Positions 1-38,867 of a stretch of 64,000 nt of DNA are shown here, in pieces. Every line of letters begins with the position of its first letter. Positions within the stretch are counted from its first letter, which is position 1. Position numbers and translations under genes: made by a program. The notes under the pieces were generated by a model that was not told the origin of the DNA, searched no databases, and worked only from the letters and a program-made list of their open reading frames with translations. This DNA is from Neoechinorhynchus agilis (taxonomy: Eukaryota > Animalia > Acanthocephala). The stretch is taken from assembly GCA_051530055.1 (NCBI GenBank), contig CM121342.1:9253480-9317479 (forward strand). The letters run 5' to 3'.

Positions 1-2650
1 CGTTGACGACTGCGTAGATAGGGATTCGGAATTCGTAAATCAAATCATTAAGGAGCAGTCTTAACTAATCAATAACGGAGTTGCGGACCTTATTCCCGTA
101 GCAGGCCCGATCCGCAGAAAATCCAAAAAGCCCAGGTAATGGTAGAGAACTTGCGCCTGTTGCAGTGGCACTGTGGGGGGGCGGCCAATCTTCCGAAAAT
201 TAATAATCTCATACCGGGAGCTTCCATCTTACTTTTACAAGAAAGCAAGAGTATTTTTAATGCCTCTCAACTTTTTAATCTCCTACCGCAGCTTGATTCT
301 CATGAATACAATTCCTTTATCTCTGATCCATTCGAACATTCGTCTCAAGGGCTAATTTCTGTCTTCAAATCCTCTCTCAATCCCTCCTTATTATCTTCCT
401 TCACGACAAATGAGCTATCCTACTCTGTCTTTAAATTTTATTTCACTCGCCGGCCTTTCACTATTGTCAATCTGTACATACGACCCGGTTTTATTCATCG
501 TCCGGCCGTTAAGAATGTCATTGAATGCCTTCTTCGTGCCAATATTGACTTCATTGTTGGTGATTTTAACGATCCCTCAATGAAATGGTCCAAAGCCATA
601 GTTAACTCCGCTAAACCTCAATACGAACTCTCCGCTCCTCTCACCCCATCCATTCAAATTCTAACTAAAAATAACACGCATTCCTTCCTGGATCTTATCA
701 TTCACAGGAATGCTTAAATCTGCTAGTTCAAGTAGATCGTCAATTTTCTCGCTTCCACCTAACGGGTCATGATATCTTAATATGGTCTATCGGCTCCAAT
801 AATACACTCAGGAGAGTCCTTCATTTGTCTCATCTGAACATCGCTTTTTTCAGAGCGGTTAGCTATCCACTTCTATCTTGTTCGGTTTTAACTAATTCTC
901 TAAATTATTCCCTACCTCAAATTAACAGTTTTATCAATACCACCGCTAATCTGTTCCTCTATCAACCACGAAGAAGTTTTTCTAGACCTTATGAAAGAAG
1001 TTCCTTCCGTTTTATTGGGCGTGAATTATATCAAGCCAAAATTCGTGGAGATACTCTTCTTGTCAAAGTGCTCTTTAGTCATTACTGGGCTGCTCGATGT
1101 CGACAACAATTGGCTTCCGACCGCGCTACCCTAAAATCCTTACAACCATTCTCATCGTCCTGGTGGAATATGGTCTCTGGGAAGAAGAGGTTTATCAGTT
1201 GGAGGTCGAAACTCACCTCATGGTTAAAAGCATCCTCTATGGATCATATTCTCTCGTCTATCTTTGACTTTCATGCCTCATCTTGCGCTAAAGGCATTAC
1301 TCCTCCAGTCATTTTTAGGAGGCTAATTCCTAATCGATCTGATTTAAATCAATCTGATATTGTCAAAGTTTGGTCCCTAAATCCAAAATTGTCCTCGTCC
1401 AATAGCAAGGGACAAAATGCCTCTCCCTGCTTTCTCGGGAGAGTGTCCTCCTCATAGCGAATCTGATGTTGAAGTGCTCCCCTTATGCCTGGAGAGATAT
1501 CAACATTTCGAGGCGCATATTTTTAGTTAAGAATGGGAGGAAGTTAGTTAAGGCTCCCAACGACCTTCGGCCGATCTCCCCGCAAAATCCCCTGGTCACC
1601 ATCTATGAACGGGCTCTAGCGCATAAACTAAATCTTTTTATCAGGGAACAAGGCAAATCTGTTCACTGAGCGCTGGCTGACATTTACTCGAATTTCGGGG
1701 ACGATGCCTTCCCTCTACGTGCTATTTTAGCAGTGGACCTGTCTCAGGCTTTTGACAAAATCTCGCTGGGCTTTATTATCGAGATGTTAGAATTTTTCAG
1801 TGTTCCACATAATCTTATTGCCAGGATTCACAATACACTGTTTTCAAAGGCCTTCTTTTTTTGACGATGACGCTAAAAAAACCTTATATTACCCTCTTAA
1901 TGGTGTCCCACAGGGATCACCTCTCTCTCCTATCTTATTCCTCTTGGCCTCTCAATATCATGTACAAAACTTCTCTTATAACGCTAACTTGATCTGCTAT
2001 GCTGATGATTTCACCTTTGTGCTGAAATCTCACAGGATCACCAGTTTAAAACTTTTAATAAACAGTCTATAGACTATCTTAACACCATGCTACCTCGCAT
2101 GAACCTCTATCTCAATTCTTCAAAAACAAAACTGATCTTCAAAACCCGTTCAAGTTGTTTACGCAAAGATCTAAAACTTTTCTTTTCCTCACTCCTTTCC
2201 AATAATTCTTCATCCTCACCTGTCGAGAATTTTATGCCCAGTAAACTGCGTATTCTCGGTCACACTCTTACGGTCAACTTGCCCCCCAGGACTGGCATTT
2301 CAAAATTGAAGAAACTTCTCAAAATAGCTAAATCAAAAGCCACTCGCGCTTACAAATTGGGACTTGACTTTCATCACGTTCGTACTATCTGGAAGTCGTG
2401 GGCCATTTCCAGCCTAGTGTTTTTCTCAAGAGGTCGCCCTCCCGAACACAAGCCACTCTTCATTCAAGAGTTCTTCAGGCACATTGATTTGCTACCAAAA
2501 TCCTGGGCTGGGTTCCTGAAGGATCTTTGCCTGCAACGGTGCAATCGTTGGACATCTTACTCATATTCCTAATTTATACTCATTGTCCATCGCACTGACT
2601 TATACTTGACTTATACTCGATATGCTGAATAAATTCTCTTTTAGTTTTAG
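1..2650 (+). mobile_element. Degenerate APE-type non-LTR retrotransposon (LINE), ORF2 endonuclease + reverse transcriptase
   Basis: Endonuclease motifs in 139-717 (LLQWHCGG, LLLQES, IVGDFND, SFLDLII). RT motifs in 1466-2572 (DLRPISP, AVDLSQAFDKI, GVPQGSPLSP, YADD, LRILG). Broken by stops and frameshifts; AATAAA near 2627. Confidence 0.85.
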
Positions 2651-3289: not shown

Positions 3290-3931
3290 TTAAATGTTAT
3301 CCATAATCTTCCATAATTCATCAAGTGGTATTCGCTTCTCGAAATACTCTTTCAGTATTGGCAAAGATTCTACCATTTCCTTATTTTTATCAACGAATTC
3401 ATCCTTCACTGCTTGATGACTGTATGTATGGATCATTTGGAAAAAGGCGTAAATGTAAAGGTCAACATAAGTCAAGCGGTCAGTGATTATATGACCATTT
3501 TTGCCATAAATACCAGATAAGCGGCGCAATGAATCGGTCAGAGTGGGTACTTCGTCTTTAAGAAATTCCGTCATCATCTTTTGGCGTTCCTCACGTGAAG
3601 TATGGAAAGCACGGCTGAATTTAAGAAGGTACTCATCAACCACAACTACAACTGCATCACACCTTGCAGCATCTACTTCAGTATTACCGCAAAGTCCATG
3701 TTTCGATCCAAGATATCGGATTATCGCACTAGTCTCAAAAAGCATTTCTTCGTTAACTTTCAGCACAGGAACCTTGTTCATCGGCATTTGCGACTTATAT
3801 TTGGTCGCCCACTCTTCTCGGTCGAATCGAACGTCCTCAAATGACTGACCGGCCGCATAGAGCGTTAATCGGATAACTTCAGCTCGACCAGTGAAATCGA
3901 AATAGTAAAGTTTATATTTAGGAGAAGACAT
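3290..3931 (-). CDS. GST: Glutathione S-transferase, sigma-class-like, intronless, 213 aa (start at MSSPKY)
   Basis: YKLYYFDFTGRAEVIR, VPVL, ETSAIIRYLG and LTYVDL motifs; normal length with TAA stop. Confidence 0.92.
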   Translation of the reverse strand: MSSPKYKLYYFDFTGRAEVIRLTLYAAGQSFEDVRFDREEWATKYKSQMPMNKVPVLKVNEEMLFETSAIIRYLGSKHGLCGNTEVDAARCDAVVVVVDEYLLKFSRAFHTSREERQKMMTEFLKDEVPTLTDSLRRLSGIYGKNGHIITDRLTYVDLYIYAFFQMIHTYSHQAVKDEFVDKNKEMVESLPILKEYFEKRIPLDELWKIMDNI

Positions 3932-4798
3932 ATCTGAAAAAATATTAGCGATGAAGGAAATCAATGGTTTTTAACTATTTTATTGGCAATTGTTTTTATT
4001 GATCACACGAATGGAAAATAAGTATACATAACGGTATGTTGTTACTACGAAACTATGTTGGGGCTATGAGAGCGCCCCGATGCATTAGATACTCCGAAAA
4101 CGTCGTATAGATTATTCGCCGCAAGCAATGGTTTTTCCATTCGTAATATTAGACAACGAATGAACCGCCTGATAACCGACAAAAGTAAAATCACATTTAG
4201 CTCACTCTATTCGGCAGGATAAACCCAGTCTTTTAAGTGCTAGAAAATTTCACAAACAGGAATACAGTGTTCTTTAGAATATTAAAATTGTAACATTTTT
4301 TAAAGACCTCAAGATTTATCGTATTCGTTGAAAGTTGTAATGCTCAGTGATAGTTAAATAAAATGTTATAGCCACAAAACTACTTTGATGGAAACATCAA
4401 ATGAAAAAATACGATTAGATTACGGTTAAATGGAAGATCCGCAAAAAAACTTTCAGGGGAACAACAAAAACGTTTATTGGGGAATCGCCTCTTATTCGGA
4501 TTCCTCGATCATCTTCTCCATGTTTAAAGTCATTGTTAAAATGGCTAAAGATATTGGTGAATTCAAAACAAATCGATTCTAGAAATACTAACCATTTAAG
4601 TTTACGTCGTCCCGAGTTTCTCGTGGTCGACACACTTCCGAATGGTCACGAGTGAACACCACACCCTCGTCCATGAGTTGCCATCCTCGATTGGATAAGA
4701 CATCTTTTGTTTCAACTAGATTCATATTGAGCATATTTTTTACGATATCAAATAGAATAACTAAAGAAATAAATGCAAAATGAACAAAATCAACTTAC

Positions 4799-4856
4799 AA
4801 CCCAGCCCAGAGGAAACTCGGTGCCGGTTCTAAGCCCGAATAAATGAGGAGGGTTG
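4799..4856 (+). ncRNA. Twister ribozyme-like motif (P1-type, with P3), degenerate, at the RTE 5' end
   Basis: AA-CCCA-GCC, a GAG-GAAA-CUC hairpin, then GCCGG-UUCUAAGC-CCGA-AUAAA-UGAG-GAGG-GUUG. This matches the recalled twister core GCCGGUCCCAAGCCCGGAUAAA at 19/22. Confidence 0.7.
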
Positions 4857-6925
4857 GTGTCAGGAAAGGCATCGGACCGTAAAAAACCTTGCACTAATAA
4901 AACCAAAGATGAGCAGTCCTACAAACACGCGACGTGCAGAGAACTCTTCCGATTTCTGTGAGTAAATTATCAAATGGACAAAGACCCAAACGCGAATGAA
5001 AACTGAGAAATGTATCTTTAAACGTCGGAACAATGACGGGTAAATCGATGGAAATAGTGCATATGATGAAGATAATGAGGATTGAATGTCTGTGTCCAGG
5101 AGCTGAAATGGAAAGGAGCCGAAGCACGGGATCTTGGAGACGGCTTCAAACTATTTTATAATGGTTCATCTTCTGATCGAAATGGAGTTGGAATTGTCTT
5201 GAGTGATAAACATGCAGATGGAGTCATAGAAGTCTAGGAAAAGTGATAGGATAATGTGGATGCGGATAGATCTTGGAGGGCAATGCTTGGTGATCGTTTC
5301 TTGCTATGTCCCACAAGCCGAGCTTACATAGCAGGAGAAAGACCAGTTTTGAGAAGATCTAGGTGATAAGGTCCATGAAATCAAGGAAAGATGTACAATA
5401 TGTGGAGATCTCAACGGTCATGTTGGCAAGGAAAACTGGAGCTGGTGTCAAGCACACGGTGGAAGAGAAAACATTTTGGACTTTGTGTTGGCAAATAAAC
5501 TTCGGATCACGAACACTTGCTTTAAGAAATAAGAACGACAATTTGTGACTTACAGCATCGGCGGCGAGAGGAAAACTCAAATCGATTATATCCTCTATCC
5601 GCAAGAAAAATTAAGAGAAATGAAAACCGTAAAAACAATACCTGGAGAGACGTGCGCTTCGGAATACCGTTGGTGGTGGAACGACGAGGTGCAAAGGGCG
5701 ATAGCGAACAAAAAGAATGCGAAAAAAGAAAATGGATGCAGATCAAGGAGGAATAAGAAATATATAAGAAGGCGAAAAAAAGAGCTAAGAAAACTGTGGC
5801 GATTGGGAAGTAAGAGGCAAATTCGATCTTCTATTCAAAGCTGCAAGGAGACGAAACAATGTCATATGTGTTCAAAGTGGCAAAGATGAGATATCAGGGA
5901 TCGAAGGACATTACGAGGGTAATGCAAATCAAGGACAAGGATGGGAACATTTTGAGAGAAGAAAAAGAAGTTAAAGAAGGGTGGAGAGAATACTTCGATC
6001 AACTGCTGAACAGTAAGAATGGAGCAGAAAAAGTGGAAGAGCAGGAACCTAACGAATGATTAGCCACGCAATATCAGAGGTCGAAGTTAAAACAGCACTT
6101 TCCAAGATGAAAAACTGGAAAGCGACGGGTCCAGGCGAAATACCCATACAGGTCTGGAAAGTGCTTGAAGTTGATGCTCTTAAATTATTAACAAATCTCT
6201 TCCAACGAATAAGAAAACTCTGCCCCGAGACATATCACAGCGATTCAGGACATGCACAGGCAGAGCAAAGTGAGTACAAGGACGCCAATTTGCTATACGG
6301 ATAGCTTCTCGGTGAACGTGGGATTGCATCAAGGTTCAGCTTTAAGCCTTTTTGTGCCAACTGATCAGTAAAGGTCCGCAATGGAACATGCTTTTTGCCG
6401 ACGACATCGTCCTTTCCGAACCTGAAAGTAAGAAAGAGCCTGAAAACGATAGAGCCTGGAAACGATAGAGCCGCATGACCAAGGACGATCATCCAATGGC
6501 TTAGCAGTGACTGGACAGGTCGAAACGGCACAATCAACATCAGCGTATCTATATCAAACAAAATCAGAATCAGTTGTCTATTCTGCCCAACACAACGAAG
6601 AACGTCGAAGGGAAACATCGCAAAGAATTGTGGAATTCAATTGGAAGCTACGGCTTTGGAACAACGAATTTATGGCACGTCTTCAACGGCTAACCGCGTT
6701 CGGAAACCTGAAGAAATAACCGCACGAGTGCAGCAGAAGCAAAAAGGATTGATTCAATATCAACCTGATAGACGCAAAAAGTGGAGCAAACTGTCGATCA
6801 AAGTAATAAAACAGGACATCAGGAAGCCGGGGAACGAAAACGACGTAGTGCAAGAGAAAATTTGGAATCAAATAGGCCGATCATTAAGACATCGCAAGCA
6901 AGCAAGAGATCACGATAACGGCTAA
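4799..6925 (+). mobile_element. RTE-clade non-LTR retrotransposon, degenerate and internally deleted
   Basis: Typical RTE 5' leader. Endonuclease fragments (NVGTMTGKS, GFKLFYNGSS..RNGVGIVL, YSIGGERKTQIDYIL). RT fragments (KMKNWKATGPGEIP). Many stops and frameshifts. Confidence 0.85.
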
Positions 6926-7139
6926 AACAATTTAAAGGAACGCAACATAGTGTTAGTCGGTAAACGTTGACATCGTTGAGCAACCAAAACACTGAATTAA
7001 GATTAACTGTTCTTTAATTCAACCCTTAAATCTGACTAACCAGAAGTGACATGAGGAACCTAGGAATAGTCAAATCTATTGAGATGTGCAGAGTTTGAGC
7101 GAGAATTTTACCTATACCCGCAAAACTGCATACAACAAA

Positions 7140-7375
7140 TACTTCTCATCTGTCGGCGATCAAGCGGAAAATGCATACGACACGCCGAAATGAACGCAGT
7201 TCTTAGTCGTGCCCTAAATACTGTCAATGCGTCCGACATCTAAAAGCTGAGCAATCTTTGCCGACTCAATGGCCGTAGACTGGACGGTATCACGGTATTC
7301 CCGTGGCGAATGAAGGAAAATGCCTCCTTCGAGACGCCACGTTCGTGGACACGCTCGTAGCTAGCAACATCAAAT
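7140..7375 (+). mobile_element. CRE-like (RLE) retrotransposon 3' fragment
   Basis: RHAEMNAVLSRAL...GRRLDGITVFPWR..KCLLRDATFVDTL; homologous to 15780-15900, 20386-20875 and 26450-26876. Confidence 0.75.
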
Positions 7376-7504
7376 TCGCCACTATTAAACCAGGGGAGCA
7401 GCAACCGACGATGAGGACCGCAAAAAGACCGACACTGAGACGAATCACTGGCGATCCGAGATCTCGCTATAATTTCCAATGTTTCCAGATATATAAGCTG
7501 AACG

Positions 7505-8870
7505 CCGAGTATACCAAGGTTCAACGAATGCCGGTACTCAATGGGTCAATCCCAACAAACGCCCAAAGAATATTATGGCTAAATGCAGCGAATGCCAATG
7601 AATGCTGAATTGCCGACCGATGTTCAAGGCGGATATTTTACTCGGGTGCTCAATCCACAGGGCCAATTCCAACAAACGCCCAAAGAATATTATGGCTAAA
7701 TGCAGCGAATGCTGATGCGCCGATTGGTGTTCAAGGCGGACATTTTATTCGGGTGCTCAATCCAACATCGTCAAATTCCGCTTCATCAGATGCGACCTCA
7801 ACAGTTAACAAAGGATCAACGATTGCCGGCAGGAAATGTAATGCAGGCTGCTGCCCAAGGCGGATATTGTGGGTCGGCCACGAATCCACAGGGTCAATCC
7901 CAACGAACGCTACGACCCCAACAGTTGACCAAGGTTCAACGATTGCCGGAATGAAATGCAATACAGGCTGCAGTTCAAAGCGAATATTATGGGTCGGCCA
8001 CGAATCTACAGGGTCAATCCCAACAAACGCCCAAAGAATATTGTGGCTAAATGCAGCGAATGCCAATGAATGCTGATGTGCCGATTGGTGTTCAAGGCGG
8101 ACATTTTATTCGGGTGCTCAATCCACAGGGTCAATCCCAACAAACGCCCAAAGAATATTATGGCTAAATGCAGCGAATGCCAATGAATGCTGATGCGCCG
8201 ATTGGTGTTCAAGGCGGACATTTTATTCGGGTGCTCAATCCAACATCGTCAAATTCCGCTTCATCAGATACGACCTCAACAGTTAACAAAGGATCAACGA
8301 TTGCCGGCAGGAAATGTAATGCAGGCTGCTGCCCAAGGCGGATATTGTGGGTCGGCCACGAATCCACAGGGTCAATCTCAAGAAACACCCCATGAATATT
8401 ATGGCCAAATGCAGCGAATGCCAATGAATGCTGATGTGCCGATCGATGTTCAAGGCGGATATTTTACTCGGGTGCTCAATCCACAGGGTCAATCCCAACA
8501 AACGCCCAAAGAATATTATGGCCAAATGCAGCGAATTCCAATGAATGCTGAATTGCCGACCGATGTTCAAGGCGGATATTTTACTCCTGTGCTCAATCCA
8601 CAGGGTCAATTCCAATAAACTCCCCAATGATATTATAGGCAAGTGAAAATAATAACAACGAATGCTAGAATGCCGACCACTGGTCAAGGCGGATATGTCA
8701 TGACCGGATAACGCCGTCAAATTCCCCTTTATCAGACACGACCTCAACAGTTGACCAAGGATCAACGATTGCCGGTACTAAATGTAATGCAGGCTGCAGT
8801 CCAAAGCGGATATTATGGGTCGGCCTGGAATCAACAAGGTCAAAACAAACAGTTGAATTTTGAACAGTAT
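7505..8870 (+). repeat. Composite tandem repeat: 117-bp unit A interleaved with a related unit B; Q/G/Y-rich coding potential, interrupted
   Basis: ATGCAGCGA recurs at 7583/7700, 8051/8168 and 8409/8526, each pair 117 nt apart. Unit A translates as NPQGQSQQTPKEYYGQMQRMPMNADVPIDVQGGYFTRVL (39 aa). Confidence 0.9.
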
Positions 8871-10946
8871 AGACAAGTGCAGGGAAAACCATTTAAACCC
8901 CAGGGCGCCTATATTGTCAAGAATCTTTCCATTGCAATTTCCGGATCAATAACAGGTCCTAACCCTACAATTGACACAGACAATTAATACGCCGATAAAT
9001 CTCTGAACTCCGACTCTTGGTCAAGTTTCGGTCTTTATGAGCGATCCTGTTTCGCTTCGTCGACGGATGGAGAGGAAGCGATACCTTCCAATGCAAAGGA
9101 AAGAGACCGCAGATTCCTCCTTTGAGTATCCTTATTCGCCAAAGATCCACGAGGAAACTTTAGACCCGAAGATGGACAGGCGACCAAGTGCGTTCGGATT
9201 TACTAAAGATGAGAGAAACGACACTGGAAGTCGATTTAATTTTGAATCCGTGGACGAGCTGCTGGGATATAGAGATTAGAATATCAACGCAAACTGAATA
9301 ATTTTAGTGACGCGGAAATTTTAATTAAGCTACAAATTTCATTCGGCAAAGTCCAAACGAAAAAAAATCGCAATGGACCACAAATCCTAATTTAATAAGG
9401 AAGGTAAATTGGATTACGTGGCGTGCCGACAGACGAACTTCGAACTTTTACCTTATTAATACATCCTCCTTAATTTCCGTAAATAAATTGTCCAAAAGTT
9501 CGAAATGCTCGAATTCGTTACAATTAAGCCAGAAGAAGAGCACAACGATACGATTTTTGGAGTTACGAATCAAAGATCGCAGTCAATTCGTCGCTTTGGG
9601 GTTCTTTCGTTGCGAAGACAAGAGAAACGCGCTTTTGTTTTAAATGCTTTGTCTTGTTACATCGATATTTTAAAATTTTGGTTTCTCTTCTATTTCCTAA
9701 CTAACAGCTCAGAAAGCTAAAAATAATCTTTTGTTCACAGAAAATGACGATATTTCAGACTAAAAATGTTATCTTTGGTCCACGATAAAAATCTTCTTCA
9801 TTTCTGTTTCAACCTTCATTCTTCTTAAAACATTCTTCAACGAGAACGGAAGACGTTCCTTTAAGCTCCAATCTTGATTTCATCGGAGGACTAAACAATT
9901 CCTTGCTCTGTCTTTCAAAGCATGCATTTTGGATTGAAAGAATAATACCAAATTTGGTTTTACGGATTATCTGTAAAAATCGTGGGCTTAAAAAGATTGA
10001 ATTTCTTTCAGTTATTATGTTTCGTTTCCTTATTCAAATTTTTTTGCATTTGTTGAAATGTTTATGTCAAAAATATTATGTGTTTTTTTTCTTTAGATTG
10101 AGATGAAACGAAGAAGGGAGTAGGGGCTGAGTAAGGAGCGAACTCTTAGCTCCTCTACCTTGAAAAAAACAAGAAAAATAATTTGGGGATAAAAGTCTTT
10201 TTAACTATATTAATTTTCAACAGATCCTTCACTTCAATTTTATCATTGAAGTGGTTGAAAAAGAGGAGTTTATTACCCTCCTCTACACTGCTGAAAATGG
10301 AAGGCGAAACACCAAACTGGTTGTTCGCTATGGAGGGGTTAGATCTCAAGGCTTTCAAAAGTTCGTCAGCACGGAATTTCCATCTGAACTTCTTATGCCG
10401 AAGAATGGGAATAGAGGGATCCGAAAAGGCACTAAAAGTGTGGGCATTCAGAATGGTTTCAATTACCACGGGATAAGAGACCGAACTGATCCAGTTGGAA
10501 GCTTTAGCTTTCCAACTAGTAAATTTCTTGTTAAGAATTATGTTCCAGAGTGGCTTAGAAAGGGATTTGTGCCTGGTAATAGCTTTTTTGCTTCTTTCTA
10601 TTTCCTCGTAGTGAAGAGTATAATAAAAGCGATTCATAAAAGTTTGGTGAAGGTCAGGTTGGTTCCTTAGATTGGCTATTATAGCTTGTTGATAAAATTG
10701 GTTGGCGTTTTTGGATTTTTGAGCCCTTGGTCAAAGGCTTTTTTGACCAAGCAGGATTCAGCCGAGGTTAAAATTATGTAGTTAAAATCGGAGAGGGGAA
10801 TTAGAGACTTGCTATTAAGCGAAAAGGCAATGGAATCATTGAAGGATTTTAAAGATGAACCCGTTAAAATAATACGGTGCCTTAACAGAAGACCGTGATG
10901 TTGAAATAAAATCATGTCCCATAAACTGTTGTGACTGTAATTGAAG

Positions 10947-14079: not shown

Positions 14080-15900
14080 AACTCTTCGTTTCTAACATCC
14101 CAGTGGCGGCGGTCGGCAATTTTTCGTTAAATCCTCCTAGTTCGATATGGTCCCTTATGTTTTACCATCGAAATCAGAATTGAAGATGGCAGTCTCTTCT
14201 TGTGCTAGCGGATCAGCTCACGAGCTTGACGGTTTGGGGCCCCAACACCCAAAGGATATGACTTCCCTTTCGGTAGGTGATGCTGCCCAGTCGCTTGAAG
14301 ATGCATTGGCACTCCTAGTCTACCAATTTGCAAGGGAAGAGTTGATTCCGAAAGCAATTGAGTTATTTTTCGGGGCATCTTTGTGTGCCCTCGCGCGAAA
14401 AGAAGGTGATATTCGTCCCATCGCAATTGGAACAACTGTGCGCCGCTTAACAGCAAAAAATAAAAAAAAGGATCGCGGAAAAAGTAGGGATGCTGCTTCG
14501 CGCTACTCAGTTGGGCTGCTGTACACCTTGTGGCGCAGAGGCGATTGTTTATTCACTCCGCACGTTCATCACCGGAAACTCATAGCCGTGCGTGATCTTG
14601 AAATGTGATTTCGAAAATGCATTCAACACCGTTCACCGAGCAGATTTGCTCGAAGTAGTTAGAGATCTCGCACCAGAAGCATTTCGCTATTTCGTTAATG
14701 CCTATGGGATTCCGACACCCTTGTTCTTCAATAACCAGGTTTTGTGCTCAGAAAGAGGAGTTCAATAATTGGATCCTTTGGGCCCTAGGCCTTCTCACTC
14801 ACAGTCAATCTCGTCGCGCACTCTCTCCAGTCCAGCCTTAACGGCTGGTACCTGGACGATGTCACGCTCGGAGGTAACCTTTCTGTTGTACTGCGCGATT
14901 TGGAGACACTCGTGAAGTCGAGGGCGAAAATTGGCATTGAATGCTGCGAAATGCGAGATTTTAGTGATGAACGTTGAACGACCAGGCAAACTATCGTGAA
15001 ATATTTTCAGAACCTGGCCCCCGGGATAGAATTGATCACTCCAGACCGGTTGAGTCTTCTAAGGCCAATCTTCAGCCGCAACTTTCGGTGCTGTGCGAAC
15101 TAGTTGATGAATTATCTTCACCCGGGGCTCTGTTCATGATCACGAACACCCACTTTATCCAAAAACTGCTGTATAAGCTGCACACAGCACATTTTTTAGA
15201 CATAATGATAAGCTGGCAAAATTAGACGCGACGGTGAAAGCCTCCCTCGGGAAAATTTTAAGTACTCAGCTGTCGGACGATGCTTGGCGTCAAGTGTCCT
15301 TGCCTGGGTCTTCCGGCGGTTTGGGTATCCGAAAAGCAACCGATATTTCTCTGCCAGCTTATTTTGGATCGGTGAAGCAAGTCGCAAAATAGTTAAATCC
15401 GTTCTTGGCGAAAATTACACTTTGGATGAAGATTTCGTTGAGGCGCTTAATGTTTGGTATGGAGATTCAGGCATCGAGCAGGTACCCGTCAATCGTTGCA
15501 AACAATCAGTTTTGGACACCCCTGGTAACGAGAATTCATAACTCTTTAATTTCAGATTCTCGTGACCTGGTGAACCGAAATCCATTGGCGGCAGTCTCCA
15601 CAAGAGAAACGGGTGCTTTGCTCAACGCTAACCTAATCGCTTTTGTGGGTACCCCTCTCTTTGACGAGACCGTAAGAGTTCCAGTGCCCCTGAGACTTGG
15701 GGTACCGATGTGCACATCCCATCGCTGCCGTTGCGGAGCGACCGTGGAACCATCGGTACGCCATGGTTTCGTCTGTCGGCAATCTGGCGGAAGGTACTTT
15801 CGACACGCCGAAGTGAACGCAATTCTTAGCCGTGCCCCGAATACTGTGAATGCGCCCAACATCTTAGAGCCGAGCAATCTTTGACGACTCAATGGCCGTC
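14080..15900 (+). mobile_element. CRE-like (RLE) non-LTR retrotransposon, degenerate RT + CCHC/RLE start
   Basis: GDIRPIAIGTTVRRL, CDFENAFNTV, WYLDDVTLGG, MCTSHRCRCG and RHAEVNAILSRA. Confidence 0.85.
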
Positions 15901-19760: not shown

Positions 19761-20385
19761 AGTTACATCTTCGGTGTAAGTCCGTTGATGGAACGGTGTT
19801 TTTGGTATATTTAGTCATCAATCCTTCTTTAGTGTAAGTAGATATTGGTTGAACATATTTTCTCGTTGTAATCTTTCAGCGGTTGCAAACAAATAAGCTT
19901 CGTAGAATCTAAAGACAAAATCAAGCCGAAGCTGGCAGCTTATGAAACCTTTTGTATGTCACCTTCAATCCCCTGGAAACAGGTAAATCACCGGGCCTAT
20001 GGAACTCTGGACCCGATAGGATATCCACAGCCAATCTATGGTAATGTTCTTCATCTACAATTCAGAATCCTCTGCCTTTGCCCAACTTGATGATACGTAT
20101 CTCCTTAATTCGGTTAAAGTTATTCATCGCTAGGATCAGTCGTTAGGGCAAGTTAGTACGTTTAATTCTGTTTCCTTTATGTAGCAATTTTCAATAATGG
20201 AATTGTAATTCCAGCAAATTCGGAGTTAGATATCATCTTCTCAATTTCAAGGGTTAATCACATGTTATTGAGTTTGCCAAAAGGAATGAAGTCCGGTCCA
20301 TACTTCGATAAAGGCACAATATCTTGCGGAAATATCTGATTTTTAAAATAAAATCATTTTAATTTCTACGCCAGAAAACAAAATT

Positions 20386-20875
20386 TTATGTTTCTGGCTG
20401 CGAGCGTATCCACGAGCGTCGCGTTCCAGCGAAGACACTTGCCTTCCCTCGCCACGGGAATACTGTGACACCGTCCGGTCTACTGCCATCGAGTCGGCAA
20501 AGATTTCTCGGCTCTAGGATGTTGGACGCATTCGCAGTATTTAGGGCACGACTAAGAGAATTGCGTTCACTTCGGCGTGTCGAAAGTACCTTCCGCGAGA
20601 TTGCCGACAGACGAGACCATGGCGTCCCGACGGTTAGACGGTCGCTCTGCAACGGCAGCGATGGGATGTGCACATCGGTACCCCAAGTCTCAGGAGCATT
20701 GCAATCCTTACTGTGTCGTCGGAGAGAAGGATAACTATGGAAACGATTGGGATAGCGTTGAGCCAAGCACCTGATTCTCCCATAGAGACTGTCGCCGTTT
20801 CTGCTTCTCGGATACTCAAACCGCCGGACGACACAGGCAGGGACGCTTGACGCCCGGCCTGGACCGACTGCTGAA
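20386..20875 (-). mobile_element. CRE-like (RLE) fragment
   Basis: LNAIPI...LRLGVPMCTSHRCRC; LSRALNTANASNILEP.NLCRLDGSRPDGVTVFPWRG. Confidence 0.8.
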
Positions 20876-26449: not shown

Positions 26450-26876
26450 GTTGCTGAAAACGGAACCCGCCCACCTCTCTAGACTAGACGGCCGTAGGCC
26501 CGATGGAATTTCGGTCTTCCCGTGGCGGGAGGGCAAATGCCTTCTCCGGGACGCCACGTGTGTGGACACCCTCGCAGCCAGCAACATCCCCTACTCCCTC
26601 GAAATCGCCGGTGGTGCCGCCAATGCAGCGGAAGGGAGGAAAATACGGAAATATAGGGATTTAGTAAGGGCTCACTATTTTGTCCCCTTTGGAGTAGAGA
26701 CCTATGGAGCGCTTTCTCAGCTCGGCACTCACTCTGCTCCAAGATCTCTCGAAGAAATTGAGGGAAACGACCGGCGACGCACGAGCAGGTGTATTCCTGC
26801 GACAAAATATCTCGCAGTACAACGAGGCAATTCGGCTAGCGTGATAGCGACAGCTGAGGAAGGAGAGAAGCTCTAA
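26450..26876 (+). mobile_element. CRE-like element 3' end with restriction-like endonuclease domain
   Basis: RPDG..FPWREGKCLLRDATCVDTLAAS...KIRKY..FVPFGVETYG...VQRGNSASV; AATAAA and a tandem duplication at about 26950-26990. Confidence 0.85.
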
Positions 26877-38657: not shown

Positions 38658-38867
38658 GTTGAGGATTGTATTCGGGTGGTGGGATACGTTATTGTTTAGA
38701 TCGCTTGTCGACACCCGAGGGAGATCGCTAAAGACGAATATATTTCGATTAATTGAATCGGTCATTACTTACAGGCAATTGAATGGGCAATGACCGATTT
38801 AATCGGTCGAAATATATTCGTCTTTAACGATCTCCCTCGGGTGTCGACAAGCGACCTAAACAATAAC
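38658..38867. mobile_element. Palindromic insertion flanked by a 12-bp direct repeat (MITE-like or PLE-derived)
   Basis: Inverted arms of about 80 bp spanning 38688-38867; AAAAACTGTTAG at 38646-38657 and 38868-38879. Confidence 0.7.

Follow-up and report, generated by a model that had tools for sequence, protein, structure and literature searches.

A decayed twister-type ribozyme at the probable 5' end of a fragmentary RTE retrotransposon in the acanthocephalan Neoechinorhynchus agilis

In Schistosoma mansoni, the RTE-clade element Perere-3 carries a twister 'T-variant' at its 5' end, and its copies start at the AA of that ribozyme (Liu et al. 2021; PMC8501958). De la Pena et al. 2020, citing unpublished work, describe 'truncated but catalytically competent' twisters as conserved at the 5' ends of the RTE superfamily (PMC7761336), and R2, RTE, baggins and L1Tc elements carry 5'-terminal ribozymes of the HDV-like class (Ruminski et al. 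2011; reviewed in PMC6765202). Both the arrangement and its proposed role, in which RNA is released from read-through transcripts and copies consequently start at AA, are therefore already published, and what we describe here is a new example from a new phylum. The locus lies in a window of 64,000 nucleotides (the whole stretch of DNA that was analysed) of contig CM121342.1 of Neoechinorhynchus agilis (assembly GCA_051530055.1), in which a first-pass annotation had claimed a twister-like fold just upstream of an RTE endonuclease, invoking the Perere-3 precedent, which is real. On our reading, positions 4799-4857 are a mutated twister relic and probably the extreme 5' terminus of an RTE copy that is dead, carries internal deletions and lacks its 3' end.

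All of the listed features of the claimed fold are present on the plus strand (Table 1), where 4799-4857 reads AA CCCA GCC C-AGAG-GAAA-CUCG-GU-G CCGG UUCUAAGC CCGA AUAAA UGAG GAGGG UUGG. Relative to the twister consensus, the AA, GCC, UAAA and GAGGG elements are intact and L4 keeps 8 of its 10 bases, with C4829U and C4831U as the differences. Departures from the consensus number four, the same count as in the first-pass annotation, and every one is a transition (G>A or C>U). According to the sequence and the covariance-model alignment, pseudoknot T2 (GC/GC) is intact and T1 consists of U.G, C-G and U.G, two of its pairs being wobbles because of the two C>U changes in L4; this T1/T2 pairing scheme is that of published twister structures. 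Before the AA, the unrelated flank offers a weak P1, CUUA (4794-4797) against UUGG (C-G, U.G, U.U, A-U), and the chance of at least three of four such pairs was estimated at ~0.15; the pairing is accidental, and a genuine P1 is missing. Position -1 is occupied by C instead of U.

Table 1. Features of the twister motif and of the adjoining RTE remnant, in positions of the window
Feature	Position	Strand	Remark
AT-rich flank upstream of RTE remnant	4740-4798	+	without similarity to relatives
Decayed twister-P1-type ribozyme, without own P1 5' strand	4799-4857	+	Rfam 38.7 bits; model R1 59.2 bits
Twister AA	4799-4800	+	read from sequence
Twister P2	CCCA 4801-4804 / UGAG 4845-4848	+	3/4 pairs, C4802.A4847 mismatch
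Twister GCC	4805-4807	+	read from sequence
Twister P3 hairpin GAG-GAAA-CUC	4810-4819 (P3 4807-4823)	+	closing pair C4807-G4823
Twister P4	CCG 4824-4826 / CGA 4837-4839	+	2/3 pairs, C4824.A4839 mismatch
Twister L4 GUUCUAAGCC	4827-4836	+	consensus GUCCCAAGCC
Twister UAAA	4841-4844	+	
Twister GAGGG	4849-4853	+	
Twister UUGG	4854-4857	+	
Remainder of conserved RTE 5' UTR, to putative start codon	4858-4908	+	similarity to relatives
Conserved stem-loop GUC-A-GG [AAAGGCAU] C-GGAC	4859-4877	+	alignments with relatives; one C deleted
Putative ATG (MSSPTNT...)	4909-4911	+	frame closes after 18 codons in window copy
Apurinic-type endonuclease domain remnant	5000-5670	+	three frames, stops
Linker and reverse-transcriptase remnant	5671-6465	+	deletions of ~82 aa (at ~5670) and ~120 aa (~6217-6231)

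The Rfam model twister-P1 (RF03160), reportedly the class of Roth et al. 2014, matches 4794-4857 of the plus strand over its full length at 38.7 bits (E 4.2e-7 in a 401-nt search, E 6.7e-5 over both strands of the 64-kb window). A search with this model had been proposed in the first-pass annotation, and it bears out the motif, though with a score under the gathering score of 67.2 bits; for that reason a default Rfam scan at the gathering threshold lists nothing, and the match appears only with E-value reporting. RTE-borne twisters of clean appearance also fall below the gathering score (36-66 bits in the Rfam search, 13 loci) because they are without a real P1, so that this threshold is not decisive for the P1-less subclass. 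A second covariance model, R1, was built from six related 5' UTRs (L045, L063, L004, L085, L086 and L087) with the window left out, and its sole match in the 64 kb is the twister site, at 59.2 bits and E 5.9e-14. A chance resemblance, not derived from a twister, would be in keeping with the sub-threshold Rfam score and with an unremarkable minimum-free-energy folding of the region (z = +0.8), which is uninformative, as would be expected of a pseudoknotted fold. Against it stand the E-values of both models and the colinearity of the site with the twister and 5' UTR found in many RTE relatives, both its strand and its distance from the endonuclease being the right ones; homology to these 5' UTRs and the R1 results effectively rule chance out, and the twister-type motif at 4799-4857 is real.

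The position claimed for the motif, just upstream of an RTE endonuclease, is also borne out. The twister lies on the coding strand less than 100 nt upstream of the putative start codon, with ~50 nt between its end at 4857 and the ATG at 4909, and in the interval 4823-4888 the window is 83% identical to L045 (66 nt). Coding similarity is confined to 5000-6465 and comes in colinear tblastn pieces spread over three frames with many stops. When these are stitched together, with an X placed at each stop, the best protein match has E 2e-86 at 44% identity, none exceeding 49%; the relatives are RTE-type proteins ('craniofacial development protein 2-like') of insects, plants, nematodes and metagenomes, and carry the Pfam domains PF03372 and PF00078. 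On the stitched protein itself the Pfam endonuclease matches are weak and below the cut-off (E 1e-4 and 4e-4), and Pfam returns no match to the reverse-transcriptase piece. Judged from these coding remnants, the element is an RTE-clade non-LTR retrotransposon with a predicted APE-type endonuclease followed by a reverse transcriptase.

The description of the copy as full-length does not hold. Compared with a relative of ~1049 aa, residues ~328-409, ~600-719 and ~806-1049 are missing, that is, two internal segments and the last ~245 codons, and the 3' UTR is gone as well; a search throughout the window for the C-terminal reverse transcriptase or the 3' end found nothing recognisable past 6465. 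Comparison of the 5' flank with 6300-9800 for a target-site duplication gave only 7-10-mers at chance level. About 1.7 kb is kept of an element of roughly 3.3 kb (a complete RTE measures ~3.2-3.4 kb), so the copy is not full-length. No second copy of the element was found in the window by self-BLAST of 4600-9500 against it. Apart from another repeat family, this self-BLAST showed only a 117-nt tandem array. A GST gene in the window has a 59%-identical paralogue on CM121342.1.

The window copy is a dead remnant that is unlikely to have a function and shows no sign of a present one. It is nevertheless worth weighing whether the ribozyme might still be active or might have been co-opted by the host, for example in processing a host transcript, since T1 could form through its G.U wobbles. 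Twisters tolerate many single changes, according to published mutational scans. Here, however, four departures occur at once, P2 and P4 each contain a mismatch, a real P1 is missing and the surrounding element is thoroughly degraded, and we regard persisting activity or co-option as very unlikely. Inactivity of the ribozyme in this copy is plausible from its sequence.

A twister followed by a downstream stem-loop stands at the head of related RTEs in ~32 loci, drawn from metagenome contigs, a single psyllid genome and contigs that contaminate bacterial assemblies. The metagenome scaffold L003 (3.2 kb) has its twister at the start, with a score of 62.2 bits, and in the psyllid locus (L004) the twister precedes the gene by 40 nt. 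A protein-guided scan of metagenome contigs yielded 80 RTE loci, ~30 of them with the core CCGGTCCCAAGCCCGG shortly before the endonuclease, and a pattern scan of contigs from prokaryote genomes added four more, which are evidently eukaryotic contaminants. R1 matches 47 of 90 related loci, each time on the coding strand and ahead of the endonuclease. Among the six closest 5' UTRs, helices P2 and P3 covary: 95% of the cells pair, nine pairs change on both sides, and none of 500 shuffles reaches this level. Nearly all of the related twisters that were parsed have the form AA-P2-GCC; their P2 pairs completely and their P3 spans 14-44 nt. Every type is followed immediately on its 3' side by the same stem-loop, GYC-A-GG[8 nt]CC-GRC, of which the window copy is one C short. 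No twister was found at E < 1 in the RTE relative from C. angaria (L002), and the Type-A 5'-UTR pattern had no matches in viral contigs. For L045, L004 and L063, the upstream GCCUG had been considered as a P1 strand that pairs with GUCAGG; the covariance model and the covariation show it to be GCC together with the 5' strand of P3. Comparison across these loci assigns the twister to the RTE element.

Copies of the related elements allow the start point to be located from their boundaries. Pairs of copies share 75-99% identity across the first 150 nt that follow the AA, and identity drops to random level in the 30 nt that precede it, as in L015/L057 (99% after, 17% before) and L006/L054 (95% after, 17% before). 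Homology between related copies ends at the cleavage-site AA, which reproduces the Perere-3 finding outside Schistosoma. For the window copy we place the junction within 4792-4799 and, with moderate confidence, at C4798|A4799 as its most probable position. In the Rfam model the 5' segment (P1, CAA, P2 and GCC) is worth 8.3 bits over an alignment cut at its 5' side (38.7 against 30.4), and the homologous loop segment of L045 adds no bits, the model preferring truncation there. The P3 hairpin with its GAAA loop is well placed, and an equally good fold arises in only 2.6-4.5% of sequences that are shuffled or random; at 16 nt, the window P3 is within the span of the relatives (14-44 nt), some of which have 14-18 nt. 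GCC follows P2 in the window, whereas the corresponding loops of the six closest relatives go on with CA, UG or GA. Furthermore, L091 has P2 = GCCA, then GCC, and P2' = UGGG, so that the window pair CCCA/UGAG is one G>A change from a perfect P2. If the copy does start at AA 4799, other copies of the same family would begin at AACCCAGCC beside unrelated flanks.

A different picture emerges from the alignment with the six closest 5' UTRs, in which the site U|AA-P2-GCC lies ~20 nt further 5' than the aligned window AA. MAFFT places the window segment CUUACAACCCAGC, within 4794-4806, on the P3-loop motif C-A-A-.-C-C-A-G, and CAACCCAGC aligns with the same motif (CAA.CCAG), which is invariant in six of six relatives. 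Since C|AA-NCCA-G thus aligns with a loop motif, the copy may be truncated 15-20 nt inside the ribozyme. It would then begin in the P3 loop at ~4794 and descend from an ancestor built like the six, U|AA-P2-GCC-P3 5' strand-[loop CAA.CCAG]-P3 3' strand-P4; the cleavage site, the 5' strand of P2, the T2-forming GC and the 5' strand of P3 would be absent from it, and AA-CCCA-GCC would be the loop motif plus a 5-nt duplication of CCCAG (4801-4810). Consistent with this, removal of one CCCAG brings the spacing between motif and P4 to 11-13 nt, as in the relatives; L087, whose P2' is UGAG as in the window, has its true P2, CUCA, 20 nt further 5'; and Rfam produces a 'pseudo-site' alignment of the same type on the loop motif of L004, at 35.4 bits. 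Model R1 decides neither for the start at AA 4799 nor for truncation, because it gives 59.2 bits to the former and 57.1 bits to the 5'-truncated alignment (model positions 23-108). Internal truncation, however, needs several coincidences, namely a GCC after the motif, the GAAA hairpin and the pair C4801-G4848, and it must contend with the bits gained by the window's 5' segment and not by the L045 loop, with the exact start of most related copies at AA, and with a protein that is no nearer to these six than to the families with a short P3. It had been taken as settled after the MAFFT alignment, and was withdrawn in the light of L091, of the shuffle test on the hairpin and of the controls for truncation; we now consider it unlikely, although by no means negligible.

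The same stretch also accommodates a start slightly further upstream, at a cleavage-site AA in 4792-4793, with CUUA (4794-4797) as a P2 that forms all four pairs with UGAG and with a later deletion of ~14 nt that removed GCC and the 5' strand of P3 (compare AACUCA|GCCACUGGGGUGUU|CAAGCCAG in L087). AACTTA followed directly by CAACCCAG does match AACTCA...CAAGCCAG of L087 with a single transition, and the window copy has other internal deletions. An AA with a compatible 4-mer is, however, not rare in an A-rich flank (1-17% by estimate, depending on the positions allowed), the GCC and the hairpin would again have to be coincidental, and both the Rfam and R1 models take CUUA merely as a weak P1, all of which makes this start improbable. 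The exact 5' end at AA 4799 that the first-pass annotation proposed is therefore the likeliest one, given the 5'-segment score, the P3 hairpin, the GCC and L091, but stops short of proof in view of the loop-motif alignment and the 57.1-bit truncated alignment.

Under the preferred start at AA 4799, the history of the copy may be pictured as follows. In the living element, transcription would have entered from upstream host sequence, and the twister would have cut itself just 5' of the AA, as Liu et al. 2021 and the relatives suggest; the cleaved RNA (AA-P2-GCC...) would have been translated and then copied into DNA by target-primed reverse transcription. Since the cleaved RNA starts with AA and is what is reverse-transcribed, new copies would begin at AA, and the 5' strand of P1 would be whatever the target site supplies. 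Decay after insertion would account for the G>A changes that disrupt a pair in P2 and another in P4, for the two C>U changes that make T1 pairs wobbles, and for the shattered reading frame. As regards the window copy, self-cleavage, its role and the exact junction are inferred.

With Neoechinorhynchus agilis, Acanthocephala joins the hosts of twister-capped RTE elements. The twister and its downstream stem-loop form a 5'-UTR cassette that is conserved across distant hosts, can aid the annotation of RTE 5' ends, and helps to explain why many eukaryotic twisters are P1-less and score below the Rfam threshold. We would tentatively go further, in what is a rather doubtful extrapolation, and suggest that twister-capped RTEs are an old lineage present in very different hosts (so far a flatworm, an acanthocephalan, a psyllid and the sources of many metagenome contigs), with a modular 5' UTR in which the stem-loop module, GYC-A-GG[8 nt]CC-GRC and then YAAAA, stands behind an exchangeable self-cleaving unit. 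Growth of the twister in some relatives by tandem duplication of a ~20-nt 5'-terminal unit would fit such modularity, and such a duplication would leave behind C|AA-NCCA-G in the P3 loop as the relic of a cleavage site; were the 5' UTR modular in this manner, the window copy would keep the unduplicated form. Also in keeping with modularity, the place of the twister in L090, L048, L062, L036 and more loci is taken by a structured RNA without a match to any Rfam family, and L090 and L062 have a CAGGAAGGGCAUCC module; the structured RNA could be an undescribed or an HDV-like ribozyme.

Compared with the described systems, the window locus is closest to Perere-3, with which it shares the order AA-P2-GCC-P3-P4/L4-UAAA-P2'-GAGGG-UUGG directly upstream of an APE and reverse-transcriptase frame, an identical 3' end, GAGGG-UUGG, a P1 5' strand supplied by the flank and, in the related copies, a start at AA. 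It differs in its host, which belongs to another phylum, in its P2 (CCCA/UGAG against CUCC/GGAG) and its short GAAA hairpin in P3, and in being a mutated copy of a fragmentary element. With respect to RF03160, the window copy aligns along the entire model, keeps GCC, UAAA and GAGGG unchanged and conserves 8 of the 10 L4 bases. It departs from the model in score (38.7 against 67.2 bits), in the absence of a genuine P1, in the C at -1 instead of U, in a single mismatch in each of P2 and P4, and in the two C>U changes of the T1 strand. The arrangement given in the passage of de la Pena et al. 2020 is exactly that of the window and of the ~32 RTE loci (PMC7761336). The HDV-like ribozymes have, in the passage that treats them, the same proposed role, the 5' processing of a read-through transcript that frees the retrotransposon RNA (PMC6765202), but they are another class, which cuts at its own 5' edge and is kept whole, whereas a P1-type twister loses the 5' strand of its P1.

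Directly 3' of the twister, the RTE 5' UTRs carry a stem-loop that is kept across all 5'-UTR types (columns 86–104 of A4, the alignment of these UTRs). A C-G pair of this stem-loop in type A is replaced in A4 by U-A in the AACUCCGCC-type family, which has CUCC/GGAG as its P2 helix and occurs more often than any other type in the metagenome contigs. Possible roles of the stem-loop include translation start and protein binding.

Ahead of the twister, a 5'-terminal unit of ~20 nt comprising the AA-P2-GCC-P3 strand (for example, AATCTAGCCACAGGAGATCA) occurs at some loci in two to three tandem copies. The invariant motif of the P3 loop, C|AA-NCCA-G, resembles a degenerate version of this unit and, taken together with the tandem copies, suggests that the RTE 5' end grew by terminal duplication. 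A different feature 5' of the cleavage site is a stretch of ~36 nt common to two loci, L045 and L063, whose elements have diverged to 65% identity across 2.7 kb; this shared stretch represents either a 5' leader present on both copies or a common repeat surrounding them.

Eukaryotic RTE 5' ends were also encountered on L085, L086, L087 and L088, contigs from bacterial assemblies listed as a Brevinema MAG (JBOFNI010000316.1), Alcanivorax profundi (NZ_QYYA01000013.1), a Breoghania MAG (NZ_JASJAV010000043.1) and Thalassococcus profundi (NZ_QPMK01000052.1). These contigs are probably contamination; L086 holds two copies of the twister-containing 5' UTR, spaced 869 nt apart.

Within the window, a dispersed repeat family adjoins the stretch 3' of the RTE remnant. 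Two segments match the C-terminus of protein P0019, and the repeats are therefore probably another transposable element. In another region, weak reverse-transcriptase-like similarity is seen to several RTE proteins, in their C-terminal portions (E 0.02–0.06); this region may represent another, older remnant of a non-LTR element. The window also contains a tandem array of ~117-nt units (75–88% matches), in which both strands bear long open frames that overlap, and an intronless sigma-class GST gene of 213 aa. This gene has two N. agilis paralogues (each 59% identical), one of which shares its chromosome. Scored against the MIR6149 model from plants, whose gathering score is 100, a near-perfect 94-nt hairpin reaches 42 bits; its likeliest identity is a MITE-like inverted repeat, not a MIR6149 miRNA.

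Coordinates of the features, local to each locus or in the window
Feature	Location	Strand
Stem-loop	window 4859-4877	
Repeated 5'-terminal unit	L086 1791-1936	-
	L088 694-839	+
	L087 5914-6059	-
Shared upstream sequence	L045 46-81	
	L063 738-770	
Dispersed repeat family	window 7144-7376	
	window 20382-20616	-
	window 15769-15899	
	window 26482-26588	
P0019 C-terminus similarity	window 15486-15776 and 20607-20804	
Reverse-transcriptase-like	window 1547-2054	+
Tandem array	window 7543-8850	
GST gene	window 3290-3931	-
Hairpin	window 38732-38825	
Twister-less structured region	L090 26-193	
	L048 1-95	
	L062 1-115	
	L036 2182-2349	

In a set of RTE relatives, which includes the four loci at the foot of the table and L046, L064, L067, L077, L052, L080 and L084, the twister is absent before the CAGGAAGGGCAUCCGG stem-loop module and the module itself is retained. 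In place of the twister, these relatives have a structured region, with covariation (for example, GUGGGU/ACCCAC in L090 versus CUGUGGA/UCCACAG in L062) and a GUCG-UAAGAG-CGAC hairpin. An Rfam search of the region returned no family at E <= 1; it could be an HDV-like ribozyme or one of an undescribed kind.
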